DNA of 64,000 bases. Source: Dimorphilus gyrociliatus. Taxonomy: Eukaryota; Animalia; Annelida. The DNA lies in the NCBI GenBank assembly GCA_904063045.1, contig CAJFCJ010000014.1, forward strand, positions 979,376 through 1,043,375, given 5' to 3'. The position numbers and the translations under genes were made by a program. The first letter of the stretch is position 1, and each line of letters begins with the position of its first letter. Under the pieces are notes generated by a model. The model was not told where the DNA came from, made no database searches, and worked only from the letters and a program-made list of their open reading frames with translations. Shown in pieces: positions 5,370 through 31,900 of the stretch.

Positions 5370-5787
5370 ATGAATGACACAAATTGCACTTTGATTCCAC
5401 TGAATCGGAACGATTCAAAGTACGATTACGACGGTGCGTTATGTTACGTCATTGCAGTTTTGCTCTTCTACTCCCTGTCAATCTTTCTAATAATCGCCTC
5501 ACTAGCGAGGAGATCAAGAGCTCAAGATGCCGTATTGGATTATATAAGGGAGGTCAGAGCTAATAGACGCCTGGAGTTAAAGGAACAAAATGATCAGGTT
5601 CGACGAGCCCTTAGAGAAAAATGGCGTTCAGCTGCTCATAGGGCAGTAAGCTCAAAAAAATTGTCCAATTTAATAAGTATGTCTGTTAATAAGAAACGAG
5701 TCCCCGAGAAAACAATAGTAGATATTGAACAAGATTTTAGAGTATGCATGTCGACTGATGTATCTGTAAATTCACTAATTACAATAC
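5370..5787 (+). CDS. Single-pass membrane protein, KCNE/MinK-like; 3' end lost in the gap
   Basis: ATG at 5370. Short N-terminus with three N-glycosylation sequons (NDT, NCT, NDS), one TM helix (ALCYVIAVLLFYSLSIFLIIASL), then basic RRSR and D-x4-YI. Frame is open for 139 codons up to the N run. Confidence 0.6.
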
Positions 5788-6189
5788 NNNNNNNNNNNNN
5801 NNNNNNNNNNNNNNNNNNNNNNNNNNNNNNNNNNNNNNNNNNNNNNNNNNNNNNNNNNNNNNNNNNNNNNNNNNNNNNNNNNNNNNNNNNNNNNNNNNNN
5901 NNNNNNNNNNNNNNNNNNNNNNNNNNNNNNNNNNNNNNNNNNNNNNNNNNNNNNNNNNNNNNNNNNNNNNNNNNNNNNNNNNNNNNNNNNNNNNNNNNNN
6001 NNNNNNNNNNNNNNNNNNNNNNNNNNNNNNNNNNNNNNNNNNNNNNNNNNNNNNNNNNNNNNNNNNNNNNNNNNNNNNNNNNNNNNNNNNNNNNNNNNNN
6101 NNNNNNNNNNNNNNNNNNNNNNNNNNNNNNNNNNNNNNNNNNNNNNNNNNNNNNNNNNNNNNNNNNNNNNNNNNNNNNNNNNNNNNNNN
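5788..6189. other. Assembly gap (402 N) hiding the convergent 3' ends of the KCNE-like ORF and RMDN
   Basis: Run of N; open frames enter it from both sides on opposite strands. Confidence 0.99.
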
Positions 6190-9117
6190 CCTTGAGGAAT
6201 TCCTCCAAAGCTTCATCAATTGTAGCTTCCGGTAATGTGCCGATCGCACTGGCGGCTTTACGTTGGAACCAGGACAGTTGGGAAAGCTCGTACCTAAAAC
6301 GTCCGATAAGATGATGGGGCAATGGGTCATCGGGAGACAGCTCGATTGCTTTTTCGATATGCTCTTTATATATGATACCTCCTCTCAGACGATCTATAGG
6401 ATTCTCAAAATCTCCCATCTTGCCAATAGAGAGAGCATACCAGATGTGACTCTTCGGATTAGTGTTGTCCAATGTCAATGATTTTTGGGCGATTTCCTTA
6501 GCTTTAAGAATGAACGCTTTTTCGGCATCTTGGTTTCCTCGAGATTCTTCCAACAAGGCCATTTGCATGTGAGCTTGGGAGAGTCGCCATAAAAATTCGC
6601 TCTCTTTGTCGAACTACGTATCGTCAATATCGAATTGGCAAACAACAATGAATCAACAGTCCAAAGTCGAAAAGTTAGACTTACCTTGTTTTTATGGGAT
6701 TCCAATAATCTATATGCCTCGATTTTGTCGTCGTCACTACCTTTTAATAGCGTATCGACCTGTTTAGAAAGTTCTGGCAAGGAGGAATATGTCCGGATTT
6801 GATTCGACGCCTCCTTACCTAACAGCAGGGAGGTAAGCTGGCTCTCGCTGTTTAGAGAAAAAACACAAACACGTTCGTTTTATACAAAGTTCCCTTCAAC
6901 CTTCCGCTACCCGCATATACCTAATTAAAGCGAAGACAAAAAGGAAAATTTGCAATCGTCCGTTCATAATCACAAAGGCAACAGTTCACTAATAAAAGCT
7001 AATAACTTTCCAAAAGCGCCATCTATCTAATCAGGGACAAATCATCAATTTTTTTAACTACCGATAAAAAGACAAGAGGACATCTGAAAATATTTAGCGA
7101 TAAAAAAAGCCGATCATCGCCTTATCGATATATCGATAGCAATTCATCGGCTGATCGCTAGTGGCTCTTCTACTGAGGTCGACTAGTGTAGTTATTATAT
7201 ATTATGTAATCTTGTTCAAGGGTAATTTTTATTTTTTGTTTTTGTTTATTCTCTACTTCTATAAATCATTGTAAACAAGAAAATTAAATTTACATTCTTT
7301 AATAGACATTTAATACATTACTAAAGTGATATTTCTCTATAATCGAACCTTTTTGTTTTATCTTTCCCACGAAATAGAGGAATCGAGAATCTGGAAAATA
7401 GCTGAACAGAACACAATATAAAGATGTTTAATATGAAAACGATAGCAGCAATTTTCTTTTTCCTCTCCGCATTCATGCTGTCTACTAAAATGTTGGTTTA
7501 AAATAAAAGAGTTAACTTTCGTGTCAACACCTTGTCGTCTATAGAAATGCTGTTTTTTTTTTCTATTGCTATTCTAAATCGGTCAAATCGACCTCGTTTA
7601 AAGAATTCTTATCAATTGATAAGATTTCTGAATCTAGATTTCAACGAGGTCGAACGTTCAGACGCACTCTTAGAGGGAAAATCGTTACAGTTCAGTTATC
7701 ACATATTTCGGCAAGTTTTTAGACGGGTTTCATTATAAATTCCTGGTGAGGTTATATCTATTCTCGACTTTCACTTTAACACTTATTATTTATATTAGTA
7801 GCAAGAACGATTAATAATTAATATCGTTTTTCATTCAGATAAAAAGACGACACGGTCATCTTATACCCTTTATCGATATAAGACACGAACGCACAACTAT
7901 TAACGGTATATGTAATTGTAATTAGAGTAAATGTATGATTCGTTAATTAGGGAATCTCAGGGTGCAAAATGATCATATGGCGCACTCGAGTAAATTAATT
8001 AAATTCGTCTGTAGATTCTAAGACGATTAAGAGAGATTAACGTTCCCAATACCGTAGAGAGAAGTCAAAGATGACGACTAAAAAACGCCAAATACTATTT
8101 AGTACTGACCTTTCATCCAGAAATCTTTAAAGATTTATTATTTTATGAAAAGAAAAGGAAATGAACATTTTTATAAAAATGTCTACAAAATAATAATAGT
8201 AATAAATTAAGATAAGAAGTAATACTAATGATATTACTATATAATAATATAAACTAATATAATTCGATATAAACTAATTAATAAGTAATAAAGATTATTT
8301 AACAGGATGTAACAAATGTAATAAAATTATTAAAATGGAAAATAGTTATCAAATGCAAAAAATCATTACATCTATATCAGTTTATCTCCAATATGTTGTA
8401 TATATAGAATATTTAATCTGTTACTCTTTTATAAAGGGGGAGCTTAACCGCAAAAAAAAAATAATTAAATCAAATAAAATTAAATAGAAAAGGCTTGGGA
8501 AAAATAGATTACACGTATAAAGAATATTACGTAATGACATCAAAGTTAGTGCTGGTATGTAAGTGTACTTTATCATGAGTAGTTACGATGAAATGGTGGT
8601 AATTTAATTACAAGATTTCAACCCTCATAGATTTACACCACTCTTCCTATTCCATCCTATTTCGTGTGGTGTAATTGATCTATTCTTTTTCTAAATCGTT
8701 CTATTATATCCGATTTGTTTGTTCCATTTAAATTCCTTTTCTAACAACAAAGAATCTTGAGAACAGAGATAGAAAAAAAAGGAAAAATATAACGAAAAGA
8801 GAAATTTTAAAGAACAGAAAATTTCCTTTTTTCCCTTTAACTTTAGAGAAAAATGAATGCAACGATTAGGAGATAAAAAAAAGAATACAAAGAAAAGAGC
8901 TTCTTAAAACATGCTATTTTAATAGATCTTATACGTAGTTTATGATAGTGATAGCAGCGTTAATAGTAATAGTAGTAATATTAATAATAATTAAATTTAC
9001 CTTAACTTTTGTTGATTTTGTTTGAACATAAGATGAATTTAAGTTTTTTTCTTTATTTAAATATCATTCAAAGCGAGAAAAGGGAAAAAAAAGAGCGAGA
9101 TAGAGAAAGATAGGAAA

Positions 9118-9148
<31 letters not shown>

Positions 9149-9684
9149 AGTTTTTGAGAATTTTTCAGCCAAAACCTTTTTTCTTTTCAATAGTTTAAGA
9201 CGTAAATTATTTATCTTTTTACACATAAAATTAAAGCTATAAGCCAAAAACAAATAATGAAATTATAATAAAAATGAAAAAGAAACGGTTATGAAAATTT
9301 TTTTGCCAGAAAACTAGCGAATACTCTGCATTAAGTAATATGTAGAAAAGATTTTAAGCATAAATACATTGGATCATATAGAGTTACTGAACACACACGT
9401 GTCTGGACTAGAAAAAAGAACATTCGATAAACTCACTCTAGAGCTTCTTCGAATTCTTCACTCTCATCCTCGCTATCCTTGCTATCGACTCTTGCATTTT
9501 GCTGATTCTTCTTTAATGTCTTTATCTCACTAATTAAAACTTCCAATCTAGTTCGTACGATCCTCAATTCATATATTAATTTTTGAAGATAATTCTGAAA
9601 ATAGATGCAACTTCCTGCTCCAATGATCAAACCACTGGCAAAAACGGCTATTGAATAAGCCTTATTCTTCAAAACTACACTCAT
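6190..9684 (-). CDS. RMDN2/3: Regulator of microtubule dynamics (RMDN/FAM82) family TPR protein with N-terminal TM anchor and coiled coil (RMDN2/3 type); C-terminus in gap
   Basis: Exons 9684-9437 (TM IAVFASGLIIGAGSCIYF, coiled coil, acidic tract), 6847-6819, 6773-6685 (VDTLLKGSDDDKIEAYRLL) and 6613-6190 (EFLWRLSQA...HIWYALSIG...YKEHIEKAIELSPDDPLPHHLIGRFRYELSQLSWFQRKAASAI). Phases are consistent. Confidence 0.88.
7433..8021 (+). CDS. Candidate small secreted protein (116 aa, 5 exons) nested antisense in RMDN intron 1
   Basis: Hand-built model 7433-7491, 7545-7648, 7696-7745, 7839-7905, 7951-8021. GT-AG introns of 53, 47, 93 and 45 nt; 351 nt in one frame ending TAA; signal-peptide-like N-terminus MKTIAAIFFFLSAFMLSTKINA. 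No family recognised. Confidence 0.45.
9124..9148. repeat. (AG)n microsatellite in RMDN intron 1
   Basis: Direct reading. Confidence 0.9.
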
Positions 9685-10063: not shown

Positions 10064-10482
10064 ATGCCCTATGTTGTAATTAGCACCAAAGTGCGGCTGG
10101 TTTGTATGCATATTGTTTCAATACAAGTTTGTTTAGGAATCTATCATATTTCTTGTTTGTTTAGGAATCAGGGCCCTGCACTGTAGGAGACGCTGATAGC
10201 GATAAAGAACTTATGGAATATCTAGATGCAACTTTAACAAAAAAAAGCGGTAATAATTTGTAAGTATATTGTTTGCAATAGTGAAATTATGTACATAAAA
10301 GAAACCTTAGCATCTCCCACCATTGCTATACTTTGAACTCTTTCTGCATATTTTACAGTTACGAGTACGAAACTAGATATGTGCCTCGAATGGTTCTGAA
10401 TATGTTAGAACAGCGAGGTTATTATGTTGTAGCAATGACCGGGGTTGGTCAAACATGCATGTGGACACTTCATAAAAAATAA
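10064..10482 (+). CDS. GCHFR: GTP cyclohydrolase I feedback regulatory protein (GFRP), copy 1, canonical, 84 aa
   Basis: Exons 10064-10099, 10165-10259, 10359-10482: MPYVVISTKVRL-ESGPCTVGDADSDKELMEYLDA...GNNF-YEYETRYVPRMVLNMLEQRGYYVVAMTGVGQTCMWTLHKK. Collinear with vertebrate GFRP (MPYLLISTQIRMEVGPTMVGDE..SDPELM..L...GNNFYEY....PR.VLDKLE.RGF.V..MTGVGQT.VW.LHKE). Confidence 0.95.
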
Positions 10483-10982
10483 GAAATCCAATTTTCAGAA
10501 CCGGAAGTATAGATGACGCTATCTTTCAAGCGTCCTTGACTATCATATAATATATATATATATACTAATATATACAAGTCTATAAGAAAAACACCAACGA
10601 CATCTATTGTATATTGATTTAGTACAAAAGGAAAATAAATTGTTTTTTTTAAAGATATCATATTATTCTGTTTATTTAATACAAAGATGAAAAAACGGCC
10701 TATAGTTACATAATTATTATATTTGGAAACTAAAAATCTATCATAAGCAAACAAAATAAGCACTTGAAAATATGGACTTTGTTTTGAAGACCCACCATTG
10801 AAATGGAGATTACGAAAAAACAATACACAAATTATAAATTACATTCTACAACTTCTCACTTTGTAATTCAACCTTTAACAAATAGTTTGTCATGTGTTAT
10901 CGTATGATATTTTATGGGTCATGTGACAATGAAAAAGGCTAGGGTTGAACATTTTACTTGTAAACTTGTACATGAGTAGGAT

Positions 10983-11429
10983 ATGCCCTACATAACCATA
11001 AGTGTGAAGGAAGTTCCGGTAATATTTAATTCTAGACTTTGTACTTTAGTCATTGAACACCTTTGGAAAATTTTAAACATTTCAGGTAGCGAGGGATTTC
11101 CGTTGTATTGTAGGCGACGAAAGTAGCGATAGTAACATGATGGGTTATTTAGACGCCGAACTGGTGTTAATTCCCGTTGAGGGCGGAAGGTATTAAGAAA
11201 CGTTATGTAATTTTAATTTAAAGCATTTAACTGGTATTCTGTTTTTAGATCGAGGAGATTGTACTTGACAAGAGATTCCCCTTGCCAAATTATGAATAAG
11301 TTAGAAAGGCGTAATTATCATGTAATAGCGGCTACCGGATATGGTCAAACATGTACTTGGACACTGTACTCAAACTGTGACAAAATAGTACCTAATGGAC
11401 ACTTTCGTGTTTTCCAATCTTATTGTTAA
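10983..11429 (+). CDS. GCHFR: GFRP paralog, copy 2, divergent, 106 aa
   Basis: Exons 10983-11018, 11086-11189, 11249-11429: MPYITISVKEVP-VARDFRCIVGDESSDSNMMGYLDAEL...-SPCQIMNKLERRNYHVIAATGYGQTCTWTLY plus a C-terminal extension. Same intron positions and phases (0, 2) as copy 1. Confidence 0.85.
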
Positions 11430-11818
11430 TCATATTCTTTTAATGTCTACAAAATAAAAGTATCATATGCTACATTGCTATATATAATATAGATAAATAA
11501 GGAAAAGCGTAATCCTTCCATACTAAAGTCTATTTTTGATTATGTTCTGAATATTTATATTATAAAGAAATCTATTCTAAGAAATTCCCCAACACTAGTA
11601 ACAAATAGAAACTTTGAAAGCCTATTTTTTACCCAATAAAAGCATCAAGTAAGAGCAATATCTCAAAATAAGGATGAATACTATTGAATATTCATAACTG
11701 CTTTTTATAGTGTTTATAAAAAATTAGAATCAGACCAACACAACAAAATAGAAAAATAACAATAAAATAACATGTACGTACCTAAAATTAGCCTATTAAG
11801 AAAATGATAGAGAAACAC

Positions 11819-11840
11819 AGAGAGAGAGAGAGAGAGAGAG
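11819..11840. repeat. (AG)n microsatellite
   Basis: Direct reading. Confidence 0.9.
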
Positions 11841-13475
11841 CGACCGAAAGAAAGAGAGGAGGGGGTAGGGAGAAATGGAAGAAAAGGGAGAATTATTTTC
11901 ATAGATAAGATAGTTATTTAAAAAGATTTCTTCTGGTCGATATGGAAGAAAAAATGTTGGCAATTGATAAAAGATTAGATAAGATTGAATAAAGAAAAAA
12001 CGCGATTGAATAAAATGAAGTTAACATGTCAATTAAAAAGTTGTCAACATATTATATAATCGATTTAAAAGAGAAAGAGAAAAGAGAGAGAGAGAGAGAA
12101 AAGTATACTATGTTGATTATATGAAAAAGCAATCTATCGCTAACTGATAAGAGATTGTTGTTATGTAGTTTAACTTAAAAACTATGATTTGGTAATATCA
12201 AGTAGAAACACAAAGCTATAATATTATAAATGTAGAACTGTATAAATAAGGGATATTTTCCGTGTCAATAAGAATAACATTTGAAAATCCTTATCTCCTT
12301 GATAAAAATCTTTACCTCTTCCTCTTTCGATAGATATTTAAGCAAGAGTTTCCTGTTTGGATATACTTTTCAGGGATTGTTTATACACCTTTTATTACTT
12401 TTAACATTAATTTATAATTAATTTAGTAATGATTTTATCATTATATCTTTGTCATTCCAAATTAGAAAACTATGTAATGGAAGACATTAAGAAATGATAA
12501 ATCTAATTGATCGTTTTCTCTGATATTTAAATATAAAGATCATCTATGTATTCAGTATAAATTGATATATATATATATAGTATATACTGTAAACGTTGTG
12601 AATATAACATCATTATATGAATAAAGCAGGAAATCGGTTAGAAGAGGAAGAAGGAACCAGCGGGTTTCTCTAATTATAACTCTGCCAGCTCCTTCCTAAA
12701 ATCGTTACATTTTCTTTATAATGAACTCGAGGTTCATGAACGGTTTATTTTTTGTGTTCTAATCGATAAATATTTTCAAAATATATCTATTTTTAAACAT
12801 TTATACAATGTCATATGTAAATATTAAAATATCACCCCACTTATGAATATTCATAATAAAAGATCTTTCTATGTTATTGATTTTAATTTCTTTATATGAA
12901 TTTTAAAAGCTTCTATAAGAACATGTCATATGTATTTGTATGCATATATATATATATGTCATAGAACGTAGTAGCCCTTATTTAACGACGTTATTAATAC
13001 TTTCTCGATACTATATACAAAAGTGTCAATTAGAACAAAGATAATGAAGTCTTATCAGTCAAGACTGTCATTTTTAATATAGTAAAGGAGGAAATTTACT
13101 TACTTTTTTCCCTATAAAGCTAAAATAATACCTCTAGTTGTTTTTTTATATAAAAAAACGAAAATAGAATATTAAAAAGTTATTTTCCTTTTTCTGATAC
13201 TTTTATACGAATAATCTAGCCAGGTTTAATTACAGTTATTGTTATAGAACATATCAATTTACATTATTATTTCTACATAATTGAATAAAGGTTAGTCGAG
13301 GAGACTGTTGTTGTATAGGATATCAATACAATAAAGTTTTCCCCCTTTCTCTTTTATCTATAAGCTTGAAAAAAAGACGAGAAAAAGAAAAAAGAAAAAA
13401 ATGAAAGAAAGGAAGATAGAGAACGGTGACGACAGAATAAGGTTGATTATGGGAAAATTTTCTATCGTACAAAAG

Positions 13476-13488
<13 letters not shown>

Positions 13489-13522
<34 letters not shown>

Positions 13523-13550
13523 GAACGAGAGAACAACAACAACAACAACA
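13489..13550. repeat. Compound (GA)n + (CAA)n microsatellite
   Basis: Direct reading. Confidence 0.85.
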
Positions 13551-15386
13551 ACGAGCGAACAGTTTACAACACTTTTTACTATCGCACTTAAATAGAAAAA
13601 AAAAAGTAAATAAGAAATGTTGCAATTTATTTTTCACTTGAAAAAAAGTCGATTTATTTTCTTTATAAAAAAAAAAAATACATTTTTTTTAAGAGACGGA
13701 AAACAAAATGAAGAGAAGGAGGAAGCCGGTTTTGAATACTATTTAAAATAATTAATTAAATATTTTCAAAACTATTCAAAAATTGTTTTTAACACTTTTT
13801 GTGAATATAGTTTTTTTTTATTTGTTGATTGTTAAATGTATATAGAAACATCAAGGACTAGAAAAATAAATAAATAATAAACTATGTTGGTTAATGATGT
13901 TACTTTATGCCTTTTCTTCTTCTTTTTCCTTTACGTTAAACCTATATTAGTAATATTTATCTCTTGTTGTAATTTAATATAGGCTTTATCAACGAGTACC
14001 AATAAGACTAGAAAACTTATTTTGATTGCTTTTTCTTCTCTCTCTCGCTCTCTCTCTTTGCTTATTTCTAAAAATAAAATGTAGCTGTACATGAAAACTA
14101 CTAAAAATAAAAATATCTTAAGTCTTTCGTTGTAAATGTCCATTGAAACTATTTACGAATCGCAATAGATACTAAATACTTAAATCTACAAGAAACAAGT
14201 GAAGAAATACTACCAAACAAGTTAGGCCATCTAGTGGTTATTAATAGAAATAGTTGCGAATCTATCACTGCTGTTATTACCTATATTCAATACATTCCCT
14301 TATAGATAGGATCTTTTAAAGAAGAGAGGGATAAATTGTTGAAAGGATAATTAATATTCTTATCAATATTGAAAAAACTCTCTATTCTTTACTTGATTTT
14401 TATTTAGCTTCAACGTATACTGTTTGTAATTGGAATACTATATAATTATTCAAAATTTTAAAGTAATTAGCCCAGCTGGAGACGATCTCGTGTGGCTTTC
14501 ACTTTTAATTTTTATCAAAGATTAGTGATTATATTCTCTTTTAATATAGAAGAAAACTCTATTATAGAAGAAGAAAGAAGAAGAAGATTAATTCCCCACT
14601 CTCCAAGTATTTTTGATATTACCCTTAGGTATAAAACGAAGCTTAGCAGACCTAATAAAATAAATAATAAAGAAAATATGAAACCAAACTGTCATATCGA
14701 ATTGTATAGAGATAAAAATCTTTGGCTCTCTATTGAACAGTATGGGTTGATTATTGAATAGAATAAAAAAGGCTTGATCAGATATCTATCTGAACGTAAA
14801 GAGAATTTAAAAGTTCATTATTTTTCTATTTGACATTAATGCATTTATCATTTACTCCACTGTTATTTATTACTTGTCAATAGCAAAAAGGTCTTTTTCT
14901 TCCTTAAAATCAACAAATCACAAAGAAATATGCGTAACAAAAATATACGAATTACTTTTTTGATTAATGACTTTAATACTTGTTTTACGTTTTATATCAA
15001 TATTATTTATTTATTTCAGATATATTAATAAAATATTTATACATTTTCGCATAAATTCTTTATCAAATTGAAAATAAACAAGCAAGATGTATAACCTTTC
15101 CATTTTATTCATTGGTTAGGACGCCATCTATCGGCTTACGAACGTAGTTTTACAAGATGAATAAATGTTTGAAATTCTTTAGTTCCTTTTATTTTTTATG
15201 AAATTGTAAATATTAAGCTATTTCCTCTTTATCTTATTTCATTGTTTTTTATCGTCGTTCCAACGCGTTACTTATTTATAGATAATCATTTTATGACGGC
15301 AATAAAAGAGAGAGCTGTACTATTTGTTAACTTCACCTTAACGGTTTGCTAACATTTAATTAACGTGTTTCTTTTATCTATCTACA

Positions 15387-15749
15387 ATGCCATATATAAA
15401 TGTTCGTACATTCGATTGGGTAAGTTTCTAAGCTATTTCTTATATTTTGGTACAAAAAGAAAATTTGTCATGTTGATGATGAAATGAGTAACAGAAACGT
15501 AATGAACTATTTGGATGAAACGCTAAATAAGTTTGTTAATATAGAATTGTATTTTATTCTATTAAGCATTTAATCTATTTTCTCTAGCATCTTTATTGTT
15601 TAGGAAAGGATCTTTCATCTGTAGACATTCTCCAACAGAAGTTATGAATAGAGTTGGAAGATATTGGCTATCGTGTAGCAACTATGGCGTCTACCAAAGA
15701 TTCTGTTATTTGGACACTTCATGGTCAACATTACGAAAAATACAGATAA
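15387..15749 (+). pseudogene. GCHFR: GFRP paralog, copy 3, with a +1 frameshift in exon 3 (pseudogene or consensus error)
   Basis: Exons 15387-15419 (MPYINVRTFDW), 15460-15548 (ICHVDDEMSNRNVMNYLDETL) and 15604-15749. Homology runs SPTEVMN in one frame and resumes ELEDIGYRVATMASTKDSVIWTLHGQ in the next, with one extra base near 15650 (total 268 nt = 3n+1). The first acceptor is weak (aaaaag). Confidence 0.75.
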
Positions 15750-18700
15750 AACTCAAAACTATATAGTGTATATATACACTGTAGTTTAATATTGTAGCCA
15801 ATCGAATACAATCTGTTCAATTTTGCAATTCAAAGCCAAGAATCACATTGCTACTATTCTTTTTTTTTTAATTCAAAGTGACTATTCAGATTGAATTTAG
15901 TTTTTATTTTTAAATATTTGACACATAAAATCATTTTTTTCTCTTCTTTTCTTCTCTTTTCCATTCTTAATACGCTTGTTTCTTTAAAGCAACACTATGG
16001 AAAAGTAACAAAACTGGCGTACTCCTCTTTCTAATTGATCTTCTTATTCAGCCCACTATATATACCTTCTTCTTTATTGCGTTCTTGACTGTAACACAAC
16101 AATCTTAGTTTATAAAGTATTTACAACATTTTCGGAATAAAACAACAAGAAAACCGGCAATTAACATAATTTCTACGTAGTTCTATTAGAACGTTTTTTT
16201 AAACTCTTGAATTTAATTAATTTTTTAACAAGTTCAATAGTTTGTTTTTCTCTTTTATTCAACTTTAATTAGTTAAAGAATTAATTAAGAAAAAGACAAC
16301 GGTACAAACATATACACTTCATATACAACAAAATGCCTACGTGTACAAACACATATGGTTTATATTGTCTTAATTAGCGATGTTTTCTTATAGAAATAGT
16401 GAAATATAACAAAATAATCAGAATTTTTAAATATTAAATTATTCAAAAAAAAGTACTAAAATCATGTTCATACTTTCGATTATTATGATATGCAAGTTTC
16501 ATTAGTTAATCTATTAAGTAGCCATTTTAAAATATCCTTATTTTCAAACTTAGTAACACCTCTGTAAATGGTACAATGTCACGTGATTTTTTCTCAGAGG
16601 CTGATTAGTCGAAAAGTTTCGTCTGGCGGGGTGTCTTGTTACAGATGCTTTTCTAGATGTAATATTTACGCTTGTTTTCCGTTTTAGGCGGTTATTTAAC
16701 GGCTTTATGCAGCCAGTTTTCGTGACAAACTATTGTGTCTGCAGTAATATATTAAAGGTAGAGATATATTTTCTTTTTAAAATACTTATTATATAAGAAA
16801 AAATAGTTAGAAAGTCAAAATATCAAATATATATAAACTGTATATAAATGTATGATACATATAACTAATGTTTTATATTCAATATACCTGTTGTAGGGTG
16901 TTGTTTTCCATATGCAAATATCATTGAAATTTAAAACCCGATAATACTCCAAACAAGCTTTAAAACTATTCACATTTCAACTATTTTATTCCTTTTGCAT
17001 TCCATATTTTTTCCTTTTTATATAGATTTTGTTATATTTTTTTGTTTTTTTTTTTAAAAAAAAAGTTTAACAACTTTTTTTATAATTATAAGAAAACGCT
17101 ATTGTACGCTTACGTTTTTAAACATAGATCGATTTCTAATTAGTATTATAATTTTCTTAATTTATTCATTCATTTAATTATTTAATTAAAAATTTTTCTC
17201 ATTGTTTCATTTCTATCAAAGAGTATAAATTTTACTTTGGGAATTTTAAATAGTAGAAATCGTTTTACTTTGGTATTAACCTACAAAAATTTTAAGGCTT
17301 AGCAACAGGCATGCTTCTAAGTAAAGCCCCTGGATGAATCAGGACTATAAATATTACCTAGGCATCGTTTCCTATGTAATTTTAACCTTATTGTCTAGTT
17401 TCCTTTAAAATTTCCATGTTAATTTGCAGTATTAAGAAATATATCTACTTGAACAAGAAGATAAAGACAATTTCAAAGTGAAATAATAAAGCAAAATCTT
17501 GATTTTATTCGAATGGAAAGAAGAAAGAAATTTGTGAAATCTACAAGAAAGTGCAACGAATCGGACGTAGGTTTATTCGCATATTTTTCACACGCAGCAT
17601 TCTTCATATATTTGTACAGCAAATATCTACAAACGCAGTTACAAACCAGACATAGAGAGAGAAAGGAAAACAAGTGGTGCAGAAAAAAACCACAGCTAAT
17701 ACGACCATATTTTTTCTATTACTGGTCGTTAAATTTCAAATTTTAATTAGGATTTTGTCATTTCGTAAAGCTATCTCCAACTGCAAAGTTTTCCTAAAGG
17801 GCTTTGTGGGAGGGCAGCAAAGATTTTTTGTTTATTTAATTGATGATCAGGGATAGTAGGGTAGATATTTTCGATTAGAGGCATTGTTTGCGCATATGTT
17901 TGGTGCTGAGCACTGGTGAAATGCGATACGTATACGGCGAGTTCACGACCCATGGTTGCACCTGACACGTGATAAGGTTAGGGTTAGTTTGTTTTTTTCC
18001 TAAAGGGAAAAAATCTCTTTTTTTAGTTAAAGATATCCCAAAACACGGATTTTTCGTAAGTGGGGTATAGTATTTTCAACGTAAAGAATCACTCACTCCT
18101 CGCCACCCTCTTTTACCTCTCCTCTAGGCTCTTTATTCTTTTTATACCACTTTCTTTCTGATTCAGATTTCTTATCATTATCTATCTAAGGGTTCGTTGA
18201 GAGAGTTTTCACAACGTAATTAATCACAGTGTCGGCTTATTGGTTATCTATGCGTTCTTTTTCTTTCTTCCGTCCGTCCCTTTTATAATTCAAAGTTGTA
18301 TAAAAATTAGACTTTTATTGTAAAAATTTGATCTAAGAAAGTAACAAAAAATTTTTCCAACAGTCTTTAAGAAGACAAATGACAGGAGAAAGGTCGTTAA
18401 ATATCTCTAAAAACAGATTCAGAAAGAGAGAGAGGGAGATAGATAGATAGAGAAGTTAAGAGAAAGGCTTGTCCCCAATTTTTCATATTGATTGTAGCCT
18501 AACTTTGAAGTTGATCCAGTAAAAATATTTTCTCTTTATATTCGCTTAGGGTAAAATTCAGGTGTTATATTAAATCTAACATTTCTGGTACGTTTTCCCC
18601 TTTAAAAATTCTTTAATCAGTTATATAAAGGTGCTGTTTATTTCTCTACAGCATTTTTTGGGCTCATAACACAATGATTATCTAGCCCAGGTTTCTAACA

Positions 18701-18817
18701 TCTGCCAAAAATATTATACAAACCATAAATAAAGCCTATAGACCTTGAAATTGTTTACGTATTCTAAGTCCTTATTTCTATACGTTTATTTAAAAAAGAG
18801 AAGATGAATTAGAAGCA

Positions 18818-18820
<3 letters not shown>

Positions 18821-18862
<42 letters not shown>
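18821..18862. repeat. (GA)21 microsatellite
   Basis: Direct reading. Confidence 0.95.
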
Positions 18863-18868
<6 letters not shown>

Positions 18869-19642
18869 AGGAAGTAGATTTCGATTTGTAAAGGTTGGAT
18901 AACTTTGAAAAATTGTTTCGCAAGTTTTCCCCCGCTGTCTATAGATAATTTATAATAAAAAAAATGAATAATAATCACATATATTTAACAAAAGAAAGAG
19001 AAAATAAGTATTATAAATCTGTCTAAAGTATAGTATGTGATAGGTAAATATAAGTAAGGATTAGTTTAATCATTTTTGCCAGAAATTTAATATATCGTAC
19101 ATATTTGGAATGTAGAAAAAGAAAACCTTCAACATATTTTTAACCTATTTATTAAATTTTTAAGCTTTTAAAGGAAGGAGAGATAAAACACGACATTCTT
19201 TTTTTTCTATTGATTATTATTAATTACTCTTGAATATTCAAGAGATGGGAACAAAAACAATAGAAATGATCACACATAGATAGGTATATTAAGTAAACTA
19301 CTACGTTTATATACAGTAACTTTTTTTTCGATCCATTATAAAAGCAAAAAAGAAAATAAAAAGTTTTTGTAAAACATATAGCATCAGTTCAACTTGGAAA
19401 TATTTTCACTTTTGATCACGTGATGTTTTAACATAGCTCACAGAGTATTATTTCTAAAACAGGGAAAATATTCATAAAAACCGAGTCAATACTCTTCTTT
19501 TTTTTTCTTTTTCTTTTTTTTTTTTTTTACAATACTACTTGTATCTTTATTTGAACGTCAAATCTATCAGCGAGTTAATACTTTTTAATGAGTGTTGAAA
19601 CGGAAATGCTTGTTACTTAAAACTTTTAAATTTTCTATCCAG

Positions 19643-20102
19643 TTTCTGGACCAAATTGACTTTGAGGATAAACGAGACTCTACTAAATTAAGTGAGTATA
19701 TGTATATTACCTATATTTTAATGTCTTAAATTAATATTTAACTGGACAAGGTTTAAAAAACAGTTGTTCTATTCAGTCAAAAAAAAAACATTGCTTAAAC
19801 AAAGAACTCGACTTTGAACGTGTAAACAGGTCTTTCGAAACGAGTATATAATTGGAATAGTAAACATTTCTATCCCGATACATCTTCCTCCGAACATCTT
19901 TCCGAACATTTATCCTTTTATGAAGAGGACCAGATGAGTTCAGACTTATGTGACGAGGGTAAATCCCTTACACCTTCTCCGCATTCGTCGAATTATCGTA
20001 AGTATTTAACTGTTTCTGCTTTTTCTTTAGTTTTTTATTTGTCAAACAGCTTATTTTTACTTTTTGGCTACATTATAAAGCTTATAGAGGCACTTAAAGA
20101 AA

Positions 20103-20140
<38 letters not shown>

Positions 20141-21982
20141 TTTCTATCATTTACCGCATTTAAAAATACTGCTGGTTTCGTTCACTATACAGTAGATCTT
20201 ATCTCAATCTCTCTCTTTTAAAAGCGCTCTCTTCGACCTTTTTTATCCGTTTTGGAATAAATTATATCTTCCGAGTAGGGCGGACAGGATAAAACTATTC
20301 AAAAGTAAATAACAAGAAAATTTATTCATCGGATAATAAATAAGAATATTAATAAAAAAGAAAGATATAGTAGGGGGAGAAAAGCAATAAGAAGGAAAAG
20401 AGAGAGAAAGAGGAATGATAACATATGCGTAAGGCTATTTTAATTATTTTCACTCCACCTGTCGGCTATTAATCTTAATATTTTTACTTGGTTAATTTTT
20501 AGTAATAGTCTTGTTAAAGGATTAGTTTTAGGATTCAGAAGTCTGCTTTCTATTATCAATGTTTTAGTGTTAGCCGTCTTTTTAGTAGTAGTTAATATGT
20601 TTATTTTCCGAGTCTTTTATCGGATGAGTAACTTGTTCATTATAGTTTTCAATATCTTTTTTATTATGACAGATTTTTCAACAGATGATAGGGATAATTC
20701 AATTCCTTATGCCGATGGAAGAGGCTCTGTTACTACTGATGAAGAATTGGAAAATAACAGAATTAACGAATATTCACAAAGTCAAATTGAAAATGACGAA
20801 AGTAAAGAGAGAGAAGTAGAGATTTTTATTGATAGTAGGATGAGCAATAAGCGAATGGAAAAGAAAAAACAGAATGGAAAAGAGGAGGTGGAGGTGGAAG
20901 AGAAGAATGGATATGAAGATGCAAAGGACAAAGAAAGAGATAAGGAAGATAAGAATGAATGCAACAAAGATAAGCCATCTCCTGAATATAAATCCCGGTG
21001 TCAAATAATCATTCCTGTTCAAAGGACTGTTGTTATGAATTCTCCAAATTTATATAGGAGATTGGAAGATTATCCTGACCTTTTGGGGAAGAAAATGACA
21101 GAAAACTCTGATATTCCGCCCGACAATTACGAGTATTTATTAAAAAGGATTATTAAAAAAAAGAAACCATCACTTCCCGTTTGGTTGACTGAGAACATTT
21201 CAGATGTCGAAAGGGATGACACTATAGAAAAAAGAACAGATGATAAACGTTCTTCATCCGAAAATGAGATGTTTGTTGATGATGACGAAGTCGTTGAAAG
21301 GTCAAGAAAACCTCCCGAAAAAGAGAAAATAGTAGTGGAAGTCGAAAAAGCCCTAAACAACGTTCTAAGAGATGATAATAAACCAGAAAGAGTAGATCGT
21401 TTCGAAGAAGAATTTATCGAAAATGGAAAAAAAGTCCACAGAGTCGTTGAGGTTCATAGAGAAGAGGATAAACCGGGAGCGGAAGAAGTTGAAGTTGAAA
21501 GGTTTTCTTTCGATGAAATTAGGTCACGTTTCGAATCAACAAGAGTTCATCATCCGGTTCCCATACCATTTTTTCGAACATCCCCCCACATGCCGCGCAG
21601 AACGCCACCTAGTATTAAACCAGAAAGAAGATTCGCCATCGTGTCCAAACCTTTACCTCAAATGAAAAGTTCCAATTCGAGCTACTATAGCCATTTAGGC
21701 TTCGATATAAAGCCTAGGTGTGAAAAATTTGTAGAATTTAAGAAAACGATTAACCTAGATGATGGAAAGGATGGTAACGAAGTAAGTTGAAACTTAGTCA
21801 TCCTTCTTTTTATAACCTAGAAACAGCATAGAGAGAAAATATTCTCTATTCCAAAAGGGAAGAGAAAGATAAATAGTTGTTATATAGTGTATGAAAAAAA
21901 AAATTATTGGGCAAAGAAAAGTTTGTGGGTGGTAACCAACTGGGTCATTTATTTTCATCTAACTAAAGGAAGAAAGAGTGCG

Positions 21983-22026
<44 letters not shown>

Positions 22027-23437
22027 AGAGAAACAGGTGTTTTAAATAAGATCTAGCAAATTTTATTCTTTTACAGTTTATCTGCCCTTTTTAACCATTC
22101 ATTTTCAACTTCTTTTTTTCTTTCTATGCCTCTTAACCTCTTTCTATCATCTTTTCTATCTGGCCAGAAGAAAAAAGTAAAAACCAACTCAAAAAAAAGC
22201 TTACATAAACTTATAAAGTATATACTGTATATATAATTGTTATATATACAATATAGCGACTGTTTATACATTATTGTAAACTATTAAGAAATTTCGTACT
22301 GTAATTGAAACTCCAAAAAGGATATATGACCACTTTAAAATAGGTCTATAACATTTATAAAGAGTCGATGCTATATACGCATTTTATTTCGGCCTAGAAA
22401 TTGTACAAAGTATTTAAAAAACAGTTGTAATTACAACAGTACAAAAAAGTTGTTGAATTGAATAAGGCCATTTAACTCGCTACTGTAGATCCTTGGTATA
22501 ATGGTAATTATTCTTTGTTAAATAGATTATCAATATATATACAAGTCAAAATTACTGAAAAGAGGACTTTTATTTATTTGTCCCCCTTTAAGATATCCTC
22601 TAATAAATTGAACAAAAAATTGAAGTACAAGCAGGCGTCTATTCATACTACAACAGATTTCTATAACAATTCTCTACGCTATTCAAATTTCCCACGATCT
22701 TTTAATTTCGTTTATTTATATTTTATATAATACTTTATATATTTTCAAGCAATACGAACTAATGCTCTACTTCCCTTGCTTTCTTTTGCCCTCTCCCCTT
22801 ATTCCCAATTTATAGAGAAGGTTTTAATCCTATTCCAACCTAAATTACTATTATTTATAATATACAAATGAATTGCACTCCAAAACTACTTGACTGCCAC
22901 TTAAAAGCATACTGTAATAAGTATGAATCTAAGTCAAGATAGTAGATTTTTTTTTTGCCATATAGACAGTAAATATATATATATAGTATAGATATATATG
23001 CTTACATTCTTTAACTTGCTACTAGTTAGTTAAATTTCCTATCTACGAAACGATACAAAGAATAGACATGTAAAAGTAAAAAAAAAAATAGAGGAGCGAG
23101 GAAAGAGGGAAGTAGGGAGAAAATATAAAAATAAAGATAAAGAGGAAGAGGGAGAGAGTGTTCCGTAATAAAATTACAGAGTAACAACATTTCACGAATA
23201 ATATAATGTTTCAAAACTTTTATTTATTATTTATTATACTTTATGTTTATACTAACTAGGTTAAGTTGGAGAAAGTTTATATCTTATAAAAATAATTTTT
23301 CATTTAATATGCATAATAAGTTAAATTTTTCTTTTACACCTCTTTTTTTTTATAAAAAAAAAGTATCTAGGAATTCGCACTTTTTATTTAATTTGTTAAC
23401 TTATCAAGAAAAATGAGAGAGAGAGAGAAAGAGGGAA

Positions 23438-23468
<31 letters not shown>

Positions 23469-25784
23469 TACAAGAAATACAAAGAAGAAAGCTTTTATTA
23501 TTATTTATTGCTATTATTTTATAGGTTCTTTCTGACGGTATCTTTGATAATTATCCGATAAGAAAAGAATCGACTCCTAAATGTTATAATTATGGTGCGA
23601 AAGCTAACTCTATTGATTGGACTACCACCTCACTTCCTAGGCCTACTGAACGAATTGTACCACCGCCAAAACCTGCTAGGAAGGCCCATGTTATACCTTA
23701 CCAAAAGACCAATCACGGCCAAGCTAGGAGCTCAAGAAATCAATACCCGTCAACCGAGAACCACATCGAAACGATGAGAATAAAAAGATCGAAGTTGATT
23801 GGCTACAGGCCTGTGTTCAATGGCGTTGATAAGATAAGTGATAAAGAGCGTAAACGTCGCAAATGGCCTAAGAAAATGCTGTCGGATATGCCTAGCAGTG
23901 GATTGGATTTTAATAGAGCGGCGGATAGCGACAGTGCTTATCAAAGTGATTGCAGATTGGAAAAAGAACAATTGGATATAAAATATAGAGAGGATCGCCT
24001 TTCCATACCTGAAATACGATTACAGTTATACGGCGCTGGCAAAGCTGAATCAAAGAGAATATCTACGTTGAATACTGAATTAAAGAAATCGTGGCAGGAC
24101 ACAAATTCTGATGTGTCGAAGATCTTTCGAAGGGTAAACTTTCACTCTTTTTCTTTCTTTTCCTTTTAAAAATTTTGCCCTACTTTATTGTGTGTTCGAT
24201 CGAACGGTTCTAGGCCTAGCGAAAGGTTGCTTACGAGAGGGGTTACCGCCCAATAGAAAAAAGCAAAGAAATTCGGCTTTTATTCTGTTATGACAATAGT
24301 CAACTCTTTACACATGAACATTTTTATTTATAGGCATTTGATAAAATATATTGATTGTTTTAGGTGGATGAAGCATTTGAGAAGAACGATTTCGATAGGG
24401 AAGGAAAACATCGTAGAAAGGATCCACTAACCGAATTGGAGAATGTCTATGCAGACGCTTTGAAAAGGGATGACGATACCGAATGGTTTATGTACGAAAA
24501 ATGGAGACCTCAGGTTAAGAGGTTATCAATTGAGAACGTAAAGAAGTTGGAGGAAATCTCCAGAAGGTATTTTCGCTTTTATCTACACCTTCGCCCCCTT
24601 TTCACTCTCTTATCGTAACCGATAAACCGGTTGCTATGCTGATGGTTGCAAAAGTTCACAGGTTAAAGTAATGAAATTTCACGCTTATTACATAATAAAC
24701 AATACCCGTTTTCTTATCTGTAAAAATACTTGCACAGTTGCACATTCGACGTTAGAGAGATTATTTTTTTATTCCAATAATTACAGATGTCGCCACTGTA
24801 AACTAATTGACAAATATATGAATAAATGATAAAAAAATAATTATTCCCTCTTCTAGATATGACTCTGGCGGTGATTATTCAAGATTATGGTTATCGAGAT
24901 ATAAGAAAGATCCAAAGTATACTTATGAAAGATTTGAGGATGACGGATGTCAACATAGACTTGAAGACGATATGGCCAGGAGGAGAATGTCGTCGTCAAA
25001 TGATAGGAAAAAATCGTTAACCTCGGAAAGTTCACGAGACTCTTCGTCAATGAGAAATAGGCTAAGGTCAAGATCGTTATCTAACGCCGTTGCAGTAATG
25101 GTTAATAAGTTTGAATGTGAAGATGAGAACCACGAGGAGGAGCTACGAAATGGAACTGTGTTTAGTAGTTGTTACGACAATGACAGTGGTGAGAAACGCT
25201 ACTTGGATTCGTCAAGTTTCGATGAAATAGATTCTGTTAGAAGACGCCATAATAATCGAGTGAAAACTTTGTCAACTGAATCATCTAGTCAGGATGAATC
25301 GCGATCTTGGTCACTTTCCGAAGGAGAACGGGGTAGGCCAAGAAGACCAAAAAAAGAAAGTTCCGGTATTCTTTTGGGAACAATACCTGCCGAGTCGTCA
25401 AGTCACGACGAACTCGAAAGGATAATGACCGTTCCTCATAAACCTTGGTATCCTCCTAAAACTGAACAGCCTGTAGCAAATAAAAATTGGACTGACATAC
25501 TAATAAAACAAGAAGAAGATGCGATGACAGAAGCCTCGCTCGGCGATTTAGTTAAACGTCAGCCAGTATCACCAATTTCGGATTTAACAGTTGAAGCCGA
25601 ACAGAATGATGAGCAATTCTTAAAAAGAAAAAGCGCTTTTAAATTAGTTAGCCCTAAAAAAGAAAATTCATTGCAAGAACTTGTAAAATCTTTCGAAAAA
25701 ACAGCGCCACCTTTCTTAAAGTTGCCAAACGAGAATAAAAATGGGCTAAATAACGAAAGAAGAAGAAGTAGCTGCGTTTCTTAA
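19643..25784 (+). CDS. Large (>1020 aa) charged, Ser-rich, probably intrinsically disordered protein of unknown family; first exon not resolved
   Basis: Phase-consistent GT-AG exon chain 19643-19691, 19830-19997, 20673-21781, 23525-24133, 24364-24566, 24857-25784 (3066 nt, ends TAA). The long internal ORFs are E/K/D/S/R-rich with no recognisable globular domain. Confidence 0.75.
20107..20134. repeat. (TC)n microsatellite, intronic
   Basis: Direct reading. Confidence 0.9.
21986..22019. repeat. (GA)n microsatellite, intronic
   Basis: Direct reading. Confidence 0.9.
23415..23462. repeat. Interrupted (GA)n microsatellite, intronic
   Basis: Direct reading. Confidence 0.85.
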
Positions 25785-26399
25785 ACATATAGAGATTTAC
25801 AGCTTGGTATTTGCTTGGCTTATTTTCCCGATATTCTCTTTTACTTTCTTTTCATTCTTTCTGTTCCTGTGTCCCTCCTTTCATCATCATTGTCATCGTC
25901 AAGCTATTATTTAGCTCTCTCTATCTCTCTGTCCGCCCGCTTTTCTACCATCTATCATATTCATTAGATCCGTTTAGCAACATTATATATATTTTCTTTC
26001 AACCTTGAATGAACAGTATTTTTATTTTATTCTCTTTTTGTTTATTTTGTCAGCCTATGAATTTGTTTTTTTTTGCACATATAATAAATGATGTATAAAT
26101 GTATTATATACATTGAATACAAAAGATAAAACTATACATACAATATTATACATACAGTGTACAGTAGATCAATGTATGCAGTATACTTGTTATTACCATT
26201 ATAGAGTTGTTTTTAATAATTACTCTTATTGGGTTTCAATTATTAATATTTAGTTTAAACTATATTAAAAAATATATGATTTACTTCTGTTATATAATAC
26301 AGAAATATACTATAGAATGAAGAAAGAAATGAAGAGCTCAAAGGCCTAGAATTAGAAAAAGCTTTGGTAGTTGGGAATTGTTTTTCTTCTAAACACGGT

Positions 26400-26842
26400 A
26401 TGCCGTACTTTATAGTTTGTAGCAACATTGACCAGGTAACGTTTTCTCTACTGATGTGTTTGTAGTACGATTACGTAATGTAGTAAATTGTTTGCAGAAT
26501 GGTAAAACCAGTTCCTGTACAGTAGGTGACCGAAAAACGGATAAAGAAATCCTTCAGTATTTAGATGCTTATAAATCAAAGTCATTATAAATATTTTTTC
26601 ATGTATTTTAAAAGAATACGAGTGTTTTATTGTCTAGAGTCTATAATATACAATTCTCTTACAGAAGTGAATCATTTACAACGGATCTTCTCCCAATAGA
26701 AGTTTTAAATAGGTTAGAAAAAATAGGTTTTAATCTCGTATCAACAACAGGAGTTGGTCAAGTTTGTATTTGGACTTTATATACCAAAATAATTAATAAA
26801 TGTCTCATTAGATCTTATCTACAACCTCCACAAAATAAATAG
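26400..26842 (+). CDS. GCHFR: GFRP paralog, copy 4, 98 aa
   Basis: Exons 26400-26435 (MPYFIVCSNIDQ), 26498-26580 (NGKTSSCTVGDRKTDKEILQYLDAYKS; weak donor gtcatt) and 26665-26842 (LPIEVLNRLEKIGFNLVSTTGVGQVCIWTLYTK...). Same phase 0/2 introns; 297 nt in frame. Confidence 0.85.
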
Positions 26843-28927: not shown

Positions 28928-31900
28928 TCAAGAGCAAGTTGGAGGATGAACTTGAGCAAAGATATTCAACTCGTAAAGGCTAGCAATTATAATGTAAGTA
29001 ACGTACAAACATAACAGGGAAAATCCTAACTTCTTGTTCAACTTCCAGCCATTTAGATGGACAGACCCGATCAATAGCACGACAGTTGTTAGCAGCGTTA
29101 TAGATGAATAAGTTAAACCTGTAAAATGAAAAAAAAAATTAATAATAAATTATGGGTAATCAATAGGTTTTAGGAATAATTTTTCTCATATTGATTACTA
29201 TTACCTCTACTATACACAATGACTGGATCCCAATTTTTTGAAATGCATATCTTAAGGGTCCAAGGTAAACCAAGGCACAATAATATATCGAACACATTAC
29301 TTCCAACTGCATTTGAAACAGCCATATCTCCAAGTCCTTTTAGAATAATACATCGAATAAAGAAAACGATTTTTAAAGAAAATTAATTCCAGAATAAGGA
29401 ATTAATCTTTTACGTACATGGTCTCTATATATACTGTATATACTAATGTATATACGTATATGTGTATATTCTATCAATTATTCATCTAATCGGTTTGAGG
29501 TTTATACAATATGAATTAAGGCAGTTTTTTTTATCTTATTAAACATATGTACTAAATATATCCTTGCTAGATATTATTGTTAGACATTTTTAGTATTGCT
29601 ATTCCATATTTAGGTCGAAATGTATATATATAAAATATATAGCTGTTATCAATTGAAGGGTAGATCAAAACGTTTATATACAATTTTCTATCATATCTTT
29701 TTACTCTCTATTGCTACTAGGAAACCTTAGAAAATCCTTATATAAATACAAACCATTTTTTACAACGATCCAACTAGCTATGGCATCTGGCATACTAACA
29801 CCAAAAGCTAAGAAAATAATCGCCATAATTGTATCAGGAATATGGAATGTATATCCAATCACTGTTATCATCCACATCAATAAATATGAATAGATCCCTA
29901 TCCAAACAACGGACATAATAAATGTTACAGTAAAGCACTTTTTCCACCTCTTTTTACGGCAATCAGGCACTACAAAAAGTCAAAGATAATAATAAATAGA
30001 ACAAGTGAATGAATTTAAAGTACCAGTGATGTAAAGTAAACAGCTTATTGGGACTGTTAATATCCACCAACATAATTTCAGTTTATGATTAGGGGGTGCT
30101 AATATATGCTTATCATCATCTTCGCTGTCTTTATCGGCTTCTATAATTTAGAAAAATAGGGATAACTAATAAGAATTGAACAAAATGATAGTTGAACAAA
30201 ACAAAACAAAAAACAATGTACATTTTATAATTTATCAATAAATTATATAAGAAAGCATTAAAATTCACAATTATTCTACTATTTGAAGAAATAATATAAA
30301 TTATAGTAAAGAAAAAAGGTAATTGATTATTATTAACAGGCAGAGTATTTTTCCTTGTTTTGTTACTTTATGAATAATTGCTGATGTACATAAAATGTGT
30401 AAATTTATATAATAGAATAACCAACTTATATGCAAATATTTACATATATGTATATATACAGTATATGTATATGCATGTACATATCTTTATAATAAAAAAA
30501 AAGCTATTTCTTAGAAACATGTTTGAAATACTTTGTATTACTTTTTGACTCTTTTTTATATACTAACATTTATATAAAGGAAGATGTATCGCACTTTTCT
30601 ATATATATATATATATAGTAAACACCTTGTTAATAGATATATCTATATATAAAGTATATTGTTTAGAATGTGTATAAGAATGTATATACAGACTTATGAA
30701 AAATAAGAATATTATTGTGATAAACAACAGAGAACTCAATTATTACACTTCGCTGTTATAATTTAAAATTGTCTGCTATTACAATATGTTCTTTAATAAC
30801 TTACCTATATCGTCTTTACCAGGCACAAGTAATATATCTGTTTCTTCCGTATCCTCTTCTTCGTCTCCAATATTTATTTCCTCTAGCAGCTTCTCCTTTC
30901 TGCTCTTTCGATTTAACCAACTATTTATCGTTTCGTTCCAATACATTATGAAGATATATACCAAGTATAGGCATAATAGTAACACAGACTCGTACCAGTA
31001 GACTCTACCGTCATAAATAACAGCTACTAAAACTCCTATACTAACGGTATAAAAGGAACAATCTCTGAACAATGGCCACTTCTCTAAATAAACTATAGTT
31101 CCGGCACCAACAGCACAAAATCCAATCACAAATAACAAGTTGAAAACTGCAGAACCAACTACGGCGGCTAAACCAACATCATCTTTTGCGATAAAAACTC
31201 CTATAATTGTAGCAGCAAGTTCAGGAGCCGAAGTTCCCGCAGCCATAAAGGTAGCTCCAGCAACATCTGATCTATAATTGATAATATTATTATACTAAAA
31301 AGGAAAGAAGATTACATATATCTTATCTAAAAAATGTAAATATTACCACCTAAATAATTGTAACCAAAATTATTTAAATACTTAATTTATACTATTACAT
31401 TTTTACATATTCATAAAAAGATTAAACTATACAAAAACCTTAAATGCAGTGCCTCAGATATCGATTCCAAAGATGGTACAAAATAATCGTCACAAACTAA
31501 TGACAAACCGATAAAAGAGTAAAGGCAGGCAAAAATATGTAATAGAATTGCGCCATATTTTCGTTGTTCAATTGTAAACAAATCATCTGGAAACTGGTCG
31601 ATTGAAGCCGGTGTACAATTCGTTATTCTTTCACTTAGCAGATTTCTAGAGTAATGCTTTTCAATTTCGACATCTGAACAAAAGAGATAAAGTTAAAAAT
31701 TCAATTTTTCATTCCCTTGAACTCTTCTTCTTTATTCATCTATCTCCATCTTACGTATATTTCTTTAAAATATAGTTGATTTATATATTTAATATACACG
31801 AAAACTGCTAGTATTATTAGAGTATTAAAATAGGACAGTTTTTCTTTATATTGGTATTTCATTCAAGTTGCGTGACTATTATAAAGTGTTTTCCTTTTTA

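Follow-up and report, generated by a model that had tools for sequence, protein, structure and literature searches.

GFRP, the product of GCHFR, is treated as a single and highly uniform regulator of the rate-limiting step in tetrahydrobiopterin (BH4) synthesis, and BH4 in turn feeds the production of monoamines, nitric oxide (NO), and pterins. In Caenorhabditis elegans, gfrp-1 is a single, epidermally expressed gene for which no paralogs have been described (PMC4423366), and the gchfr duplicates of salmonids are a pair that goes back to whole-genome duplication (PMC1890551). This salmonid pair was the only case of GFRP duplicates that we found in a literature search. Here, we analyzed a 64-kb stretch of the genome of the miniature marine annelid Dimorphilus gyrociliatus (assembly GCA_904063045.1, contig CAJFCJ010000014.1), called the window in the following, which holds four GFRP loci on one strand. 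All positions are given in window coordinates; adding 979,375 converts them into contig coordinates. Mean gene-family size is smaller in D. gyrociliatus than in other annelids (PMC7854359), so that additional GFRP copies stand out and run somewhat against the genomic trend. We consider it probable that the locus represents an old, lineage-specific tandem expansion of GCHFR, composed of the ortholog (copy 1), two altered copies that have been retained for a long time (copies 2 and 4), and a decaying copy 3.

Four GFRP Loci With a Common Gene Structure

Four loci of the GFRP family (PF06399) lie on the + strand of the window, with starts at 10064, 10983, 15387, and 26400, and share a three-exon layout with the same intron phases:

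Copy 1: exons 10064-10099, 10165-10259, and 10359-10482, + strand; canonical GFRP of 84 aa, read from the sequence
Copy 2: exons 10983-11018, 11086-11189, and 11249-11429, + strand; diverged, intact paralog of about 106 aa
Copy 3: exons 15387-15419, 15460-15548, and 15604-15749, + strand; frame-broken, probable pseudogene
Copy 4: exons 26400-26435, 26498-26580, and 26665-26842, + strand; diverged, intact paralog of about 98 aa

When every exon was used as a tblastn query against the whole window, exactly these four places matched and no fifth GFRP locus appeared. A first-pass annotation, made from the DNA letters alone, had placed four same-strand GFRP genes at these starts, which both Pfam and tblastn bear out. 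As a four-member set, however, the locus comprises three intact genes and one probable pseudogene. Pfam matches were scored exon by exon, a procedure that underestimates whole proteins, and were compared with the curated PF06399 cut-off of 25 bits. Both exon 2 (28.9 bits) and exon 3 (54.8 bits) of copy 1 scored above the cut-off, as did exon 3 of copy 2 (45.9 bits) and exon 3 of copy 4 (40.4 bits). Exon 2 of copy 2 (16.9 bits) and exon 3 of copy 3 (18.4 bits, covering its last 23 residues only) remained below it, and the exon-wise scan yielded no PF06399 match for exon 2 of copies 3 and 4.

The identical exon phases seen at first pass hold throughout: in all four copies, intron 1 lies in phase 0 after codon 12 (codon 11 in copy 3) and intron 2 lies in phase 2, its position in GFRP genes being directly before a conserved Y/F-E-Y. 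The introns are 40-99 nt long and thus fit the median of 66 nt reported for this species (PMC7854359). Since the same exon limits are found in the GFRP gene of another invertebrate (loci L002/L003 of our search), we regard the three-exon structure as ancestral. A pair of PF06399 open reading frames (ORFs) at L003, considered as a further tandem duplication, turned out to be exons 2 and 3 of one gene. In copy 4, the donor of exon 2 (GTCATT) is the sole GT before an in-frame stop, and its use yields the phase-2 junction of the family. As a side observation, intron 1 of copy 1 contains the 12-nt acceptor motif tgtttaggaatc twice, 28 nt apart (10130-10169); use of the upstream one would shift the frame.

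Copies 2 and 4 Deviate at Positions Conserved in the Family

When a library of 1.84 billion proteins was searched exhaustively by profile, with the exon 3 sequences of copies 1, 2, and 4 as queries, only 191 cluster representatives were returned at E ≤ 0.001. Measured against the family, copy 1 is the sole canonical member, in line with the first-pass annotation: it encodes 84 aa with the first strand STKVRL, the motif GVGQT, and an 18-residue loop containing GNN. Exons 2 and 3 of copy 1 align without gaps to residues 13-43 and 45-84 of human GFRP, and its exon 3 is 65-76% identical to the GFRPs of other animals. The best exon 3 identities to foreign GFRPs were at most 58% for copy 2 and at most 65% for copy 4, which is no better than the family background.

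Copy 2 has the first strand SVKEVP (V8-K-E-V-P12), the motif GYGQT, a loop of 21 residues without GN, and a tail of 18 aa. The corresponding features of copy 4 are CSNIDQ (S8-N-I-D-Q12), GVGQV, a loop of 13 residues without GN, and a tail of 17 aa. The V-K-E-V, GYGQT, and C-terminal extension attributed to copy 2 at first pass were therefore read correctly. For copy 4, GVGQV and the extension were correct as well, but N-I-D-Q occupies positions 9-12 and not 8-11. The first-pass annotation would also place residues 9-11 and 75-76 in the phenylalanine pocket; a literature search for such pocket residues gave no match.

The proposal that the divergence affects positions otherwise kept by the family is supported by the counts for three elements. 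In full-length relatives, the first strand follows the consensus M-P-Y-x-L-[IV]-S-T-Q-[IV]-R-[LM], with Q9 in 22, I or V10 in 26, and R11 in 20 of 29 sequences. Copy 1 conforms to this pattern (its K9 also occurs in 3 of the 29 relatives), and copies 2, 3, and 4 depart from it. Between helix 1 and the conserved Pro, 45 of 50 relatives have a loop of 18 residues, and 43 of 50 carry GN or GQ in it. The same loop length is found in copy 1, together with GNN; the loops of copies 2 and 4, with 21 and 13 residues, match neither in length nor in content. The third element, G-x-G-Q-T, is found in 140 of 153 library proteins as part of the C-terminal motif T-G-[VI]-G-Q-T-x-x-W-x-L. This motif is complete in copy 1, and copy 4 has Q-V instead of Q-T. 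The Y that copy 2 shows at the V/I position was seen in none of 157 motif instances, 150 of which have V, I, or L there. The C-terminal tails, also considered as a special trait of copies 2 and 4, were rejected as such, since tails of this kind are widespread in GFRPs of invertebrates, Haliotis and Elysia among them.

Despite these changes, the core of the GFRP fold persists in copies 2 and 4: the G-x-G-Q...W-T-L end is retained, as are the two helices and the hydrophobic core. For exons 2 and 3 of copy 2, AlphaFold2 gave a model with a mean predicted local distance difference test (pLDDT) score of 82, with about 51 in the tail, and the top 12 matches of this model in the PDB were all GFRP. 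Domains of KCTD proteins were among the weak structural matches of this model and also appeared as a neighbor in a feature search.

Arginine R235 of GCH1 hydrogen-bonds the carbonyl of L40 in human GFRP, a contact that is apparently essential for complex formation (Ebenhoch et al., PMC7750480). The gapless alignment of copy 1 to human residues 13-43 places the loop that follows helix 1 around L40. The remodeling of this loop in copies 2 and 4 speaks against docking on GCH1 in the canonical manner. This bears on the idea that the paralogs form mixed pentamers with copy 1, or cap GCH1 with a changed ligand specificity, which would constitute a new regulatory layer of BH4 synthesis. Retention of the core fold and of G-x-G-Q in copies 2 and 4 would fit such assemblies, and so would the fact that the divergence is on surface elements and not in the core. 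However, the L40-contact loop has gained three residues in copy 2 and lost five in copy 4, and we regard mixed pentamers or altered caps as distinctly unlikely. A response to other ligands and a dominant-negative action of the paralogs, also proposed at first pass, would likewise be conjecture.

Age and Constraint of the Copies

The copies share only 30-48% amino-acid identity. Between them, the proportion of synonymous differences (pS) is 0.64-0.78 and thus saturated, and the proportion of nonsynonymous differences (pN) is 0.34-0.47. With the synonymous substitution rate (dS) saturated, the ratio of nonsynonymous to synonymous rates (dN/dS) between paralogs is uninformative beyond the statement that pN is smaller than pS. 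At the DNA level, alignment between copies is limited to about 75 nt of exon 3 (72-74% identity) and fails in introns and flanks. The saturation of the synonymous sites suggests that the local duplications giving rise to copies 2 and 4 happened long ago. Together with the gap between the exon 3 identities of copy 1 and those of copies 2 and 4 to foreign GFRPs, it also supports the first-pass view of a GFRP expansion with one canonical and several diverged members as both real and old.

At the local base composition, the probability of a stop is 0.083 per codon, and frames of 106 and 98 codons would be open by chance with probabilities of about 1e-4 and about 2e-4, respectively. Copies 2 and 4 also keep 13 invariant exon 3 residues, their start codons, and phase-correct splice sites. 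These features, in combination with saturated synonymous sites and pN below pS, show that purifying selection acted on copies 2 and 4 over most of the time since they arose; this does not imply constraint at the present day.

In a FastTree phylogeny of 40 exon 3 sites, with supports below 0.87, the canonical sequences included copy 1. The tree is informative only for the long branches of copies 2 and 4, which came out together with other fast-evolving sequences, on terminal branches of 0.76 and 0.61 vs. a median of 0.085. We found no ortholog of copy 2 or copy 4 from other species in the protein collections, from which other dinophilids are possibly absent.

Public Gene Models of the Locus

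The best match of the profile search was CAD5121369.1 (DgyrCDS9891), a D. gyrociliatus protein of 166 aa. Its residues 1-72 are identical to copy 1 up to ...AMTG, and residues 73-166 correspond to copy 2 from exon 2 to the stop; these latter residues are the part that we modeled. The join uses a cryptic donor, GGG/GTTGGT, within exon 3 of copy 1 at about 10441 and skips the MPY-encoding exon 1 of copy 2. The public model independently supports the junction between exons 2 and 3 of copy 2.

Taken at face value, this model would make copies 1 and 2 a single gene for a two-domain GFRP-GFRP protein. A similar two-domain model exists in the centipede Strigamia maritima, where T1J688 comprises 182 aa with two adjacent GFRP units. 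However, the cryptic donor removes the last strand of copy 1, including the family-invariant GQT...WTL and the conserved stop, and the join bypasses the intact MPY exon 1 of copy 2 and its good donor. Moreover, the Strigamia join is at a different position, as expected of prediction artifacts over tandem genes. We consider a two-domain gene highly improbable and interpret CAD5121369.1 as an artificial fusion of copies 1 and 2 by the annotation; likewise, T1J688 most likely represents two tandem genes merged by prediction.

The library of 1.84 billion proteins contained no copy 3 or copy 4 sequence, meaning that both are unannotated. A word-index protein search with exon 3 of copy 4, exon 3 of copy 1, and exons 2 and 3 of copy 2 came back blank, these queries being too short and too diverged for three shared 5-mers, so that the blanks carry little information. 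GFRP is not mentioned in the supplements of the genome paper. The public annotation is thus wrong at the GFRP locus, with one chimeric model and two missing loci, and orthology tables consequently count one GFRP gene where three or four exist.

Copy 3 Is Probably a Pseudogene

In copy 3, exon 3 is divided between two reading frames, with KGSFICRHSPTEVMNR in one and EDIGYRVATMASTKDSVIWTLH in the next, and the earlier frame ends with ...SPTEVMNR(V). One extra G near 15653 (GTT-G-GAA) accounts for the break. As the frame is otherwise open, the break is either recent or an assembly error. In place of G-x-G-Q-T, copy 3 has STKDS, and its first strand reads VRTFDW. Exon 1 has 11 codons and is followed by an intron of 40 nt with a weak, A-rich acceptor. 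Copy 3 scores 18.4 bits against PF06399, below the cut-off of 25, and its reading frame is not intact. The 1-nt frameshift in exon 3 and the loss of G-x-G-Q-T suggest that it is probably a pseudogene. The first-pass annotation had recognized the lost GQT (STKDS) but overlooked the frameshift; as assembled, copy 3 encodes no full GFRP.

Retained Genes or Silent Relics

Several observations weigh against an expansion in which copies 2 and 4 have been retained as genes. Their constraint is read from open frames and from pN below pS among saturated paralogs, and a recent loss of function would be compatible with both. The GTCATT donor of copy 4 exon 2 is weak. Transcript-derived proteins of copies 2 and 4 are missing from the collections, an absence of little weight given that there is none for copy 1 either. 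Copies 3 and 4 also have no model in the annotation of the genome paper, in which transcript assemblies were weighted with 10 and the material came from embryos and females; their absence there is weak evidence for low or restricted expression. The only run holding words of copy 4 is of unknown kind and contained 0.51 of the sampled words. This share is near the 0.55 computed for an exon-only transcript, and partial cover by DNA fits equally well. Finally, the frameshift that marks copy 3 as decaying could be an assembly error.

Some of these points would also suit a different history, in which copies 2, 3, and 4 are all silent relics, either unexpressed or recently inactivated, and only copy 1 matters. 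The broken frame and lost motif of copy 3 and the destruction of the GCH1-contact loop in copies 2 and 4 fit such a history, as do the weak copy 4 donor, the absence of copies 3 and 4 from the transcript-weighted annotation, and the collections without a transcript-derived protein of copy 2 or 4. Relics, however, would hardly be expected to show saturated synonymous sites and still have frames of 106 and 98 codons open, each with a chance of about 1e-4. Copies 2 and 4 have also kept their starts, phase-correct splice sites, and the 13 invariant exon 3 residues, with pN well below pS, and the copy 2 model folds confidently as GFRP. In addition, the annotation drew on transcriptomes of embryos and females, in which genes restricted to males or to particular cell types may be missed. 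Considering both sides, we hold the relic explanation to be unlikely and favor the old expansion with an ortholog, two long-retained altered copies, and one decaying copy.

Genomic Neighborhood of the GFRP Copies

Two further features lie next to or between the GFRP copies:

RMD1-3 (regulator of microtubule dynamics) gene: 5636..9684, - strand; PF21033, 81.7 bits at 6191-6568
Unrelated coding DNA between copies 3 and 4: 20567..25784, + strand; ORFs of 407 and 270 aa, acidic or serine-rich

The RMD1-3 gene is arranged head-to-head with copy 1. Its first-exon ORF (9433-9684) is 380 nt upstream of the copy 1 ATG, and the RMD1-3 gene is interrupted by an assembly gap of 402 N. Human GCHFR adjoins RMDN3 on 15q15, and the adjacency of RMD1-3 to copy 1 supports an ancestral position of this copy and may represent conserved microsynteny.

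The 407- and 270-aa ORFs matched no Pfam family and showed no similarity to GFRP by tblastn, in agreement with the earlier description of the copies as interleaved with unrelated DNA. The region is flanked by a homeodomain exon (89-640, - strand, 74 bits) and by a Na/Ca-exchanger exon (30779-31246, - strand, 68.9 bits).

Discussion

If the D. gyrociliatus locus is an old GCHFR expansion, copy 1 would by homology work like mammalian GFRP, i.e., as a pentamer capping the GTP cyclohydrolase I decamer. This cap would confer BH4 inhibition and phenylalanine stimulation on the enzyme. Copies 2 and 4 would have arisen by local duplication long ago and have been retained by selection as coding genes, with the core of the fold kept and the first beta-strand (residues 8-12) and the L40-G-N-N loop rebuilt. 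They may have become sub- or neo-functionalized, such that GCH1 binding, the response to effectors, or both would be unlike those of copy 1, and they would probably be used in a restricted stage, tissue, or sex. This functional reading of the two copies is a conjecture from their sequences. Copy 3 would be one more old duplicate, dead or dying, with a frameshift and without the invariant motif.

A more specific proposal is that copies 2 and 4 act in restricted cells, in restricted stages, or in the dwarf male as alternative caps or decoys of GCH1, so that the paralog present would set BH4 synthesis. We consider this a long shot; if true, it would mean a combinatorial regulator system new to the BH4 pathway. 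Independently of it, the annelid genome with the smallest gene families appears to have kept two additional genes with a GFRP fold for a very long time, and the changes in both sit on the strand and the loop that face GCH1. Should copies 2 and 4 be expressed, they would provide natural experiments on how an allosteric cap recognizes its enzyme and its effectors.

Mammalian GFRP/GCHFR (rat 1JG5, 1IS7, and 1WPL; human 6Z80, 7ACC, 7ALA, and 7ALC) is one of the closest described systems. Copy 1 aligns with it over exons 2-3 without gaps, has 84 aa, and shares its first strand at the N-terminus, the GNN loop, and the terminal GVGQT...WTLHK. The mammalian structures match the copy 2 model with template modeling (TM) scores of 0.57-0.74. 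Copies 2 and 4 differ from mammalian GFRP at residues 8-12, in how long the L40 loop is and what it contains, in their tails of 17-18 aa, and in Y (copy 2) or V (copy 4) at motif positions that are otherwise nearly invariant. Mammals have a single GFRP gene, unlike D. gyrociliatus. The same contrast applies to C. elegans gfrp-1, which is an invertebrate GFRP ortholog like copy 1 but single-copy. Salmonids have more than one gchfr gene per genome, as found here, but their duplicates are recent, similar to each other, and not in tandem.

The GFRP fold can also serve partners other than GCH1. The H1 domains of KCTD8/12/16 and the C-terminal domain of KCTD1 have a GFRP-like fold (PMC7618933), but they show no sequence relationship to copies 2-4, which clearly belong to PF06399.

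The premise of the first-pass annotation that GFRP is usually single-copy agrees with the small number of representatives (191 in 1.84 billion proteins) and with the salmonid pair as the only duplicates in the literature, but multi-copy loci in a centipede and a coral qualify it. As with the public model of copies 1 and 2, T1J688 of Strigamia is a merged two-unit model; it comes from a different phylum, and both of its units keep G-x-G-Q-T. In the 40-site tree, which is weak, the second Strigamia unit falls into one group with copies 2 and 4 at a support of 0.76, likely through long-branch attraction. In the coral Oculina patagonica (CM126647.1, 10,945,839-10,969,959; KAL9952882.1), at least six GFRP-like units lie on the same strand within 24 kb. 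These units form a tandem array of divergent GFRP-like sequences as in D. gyrociliatus, but they are apparently intronless, most are without G-x-G-Q-T, and they are much more diverged; the relationship is at the level of the family only. Judged by its units, the Oculina array appears to be a second, independent, and undescribed expansion of the GFRP family. Tandem expansion of GFRP is thus rare and undescribed, but not unique. The independent arrays in coral and centipede hint that such diversification may have occurred more than once, and the GFRP family has undescribed divergent branches in these two lineages as well as in D. gyrociliatus.

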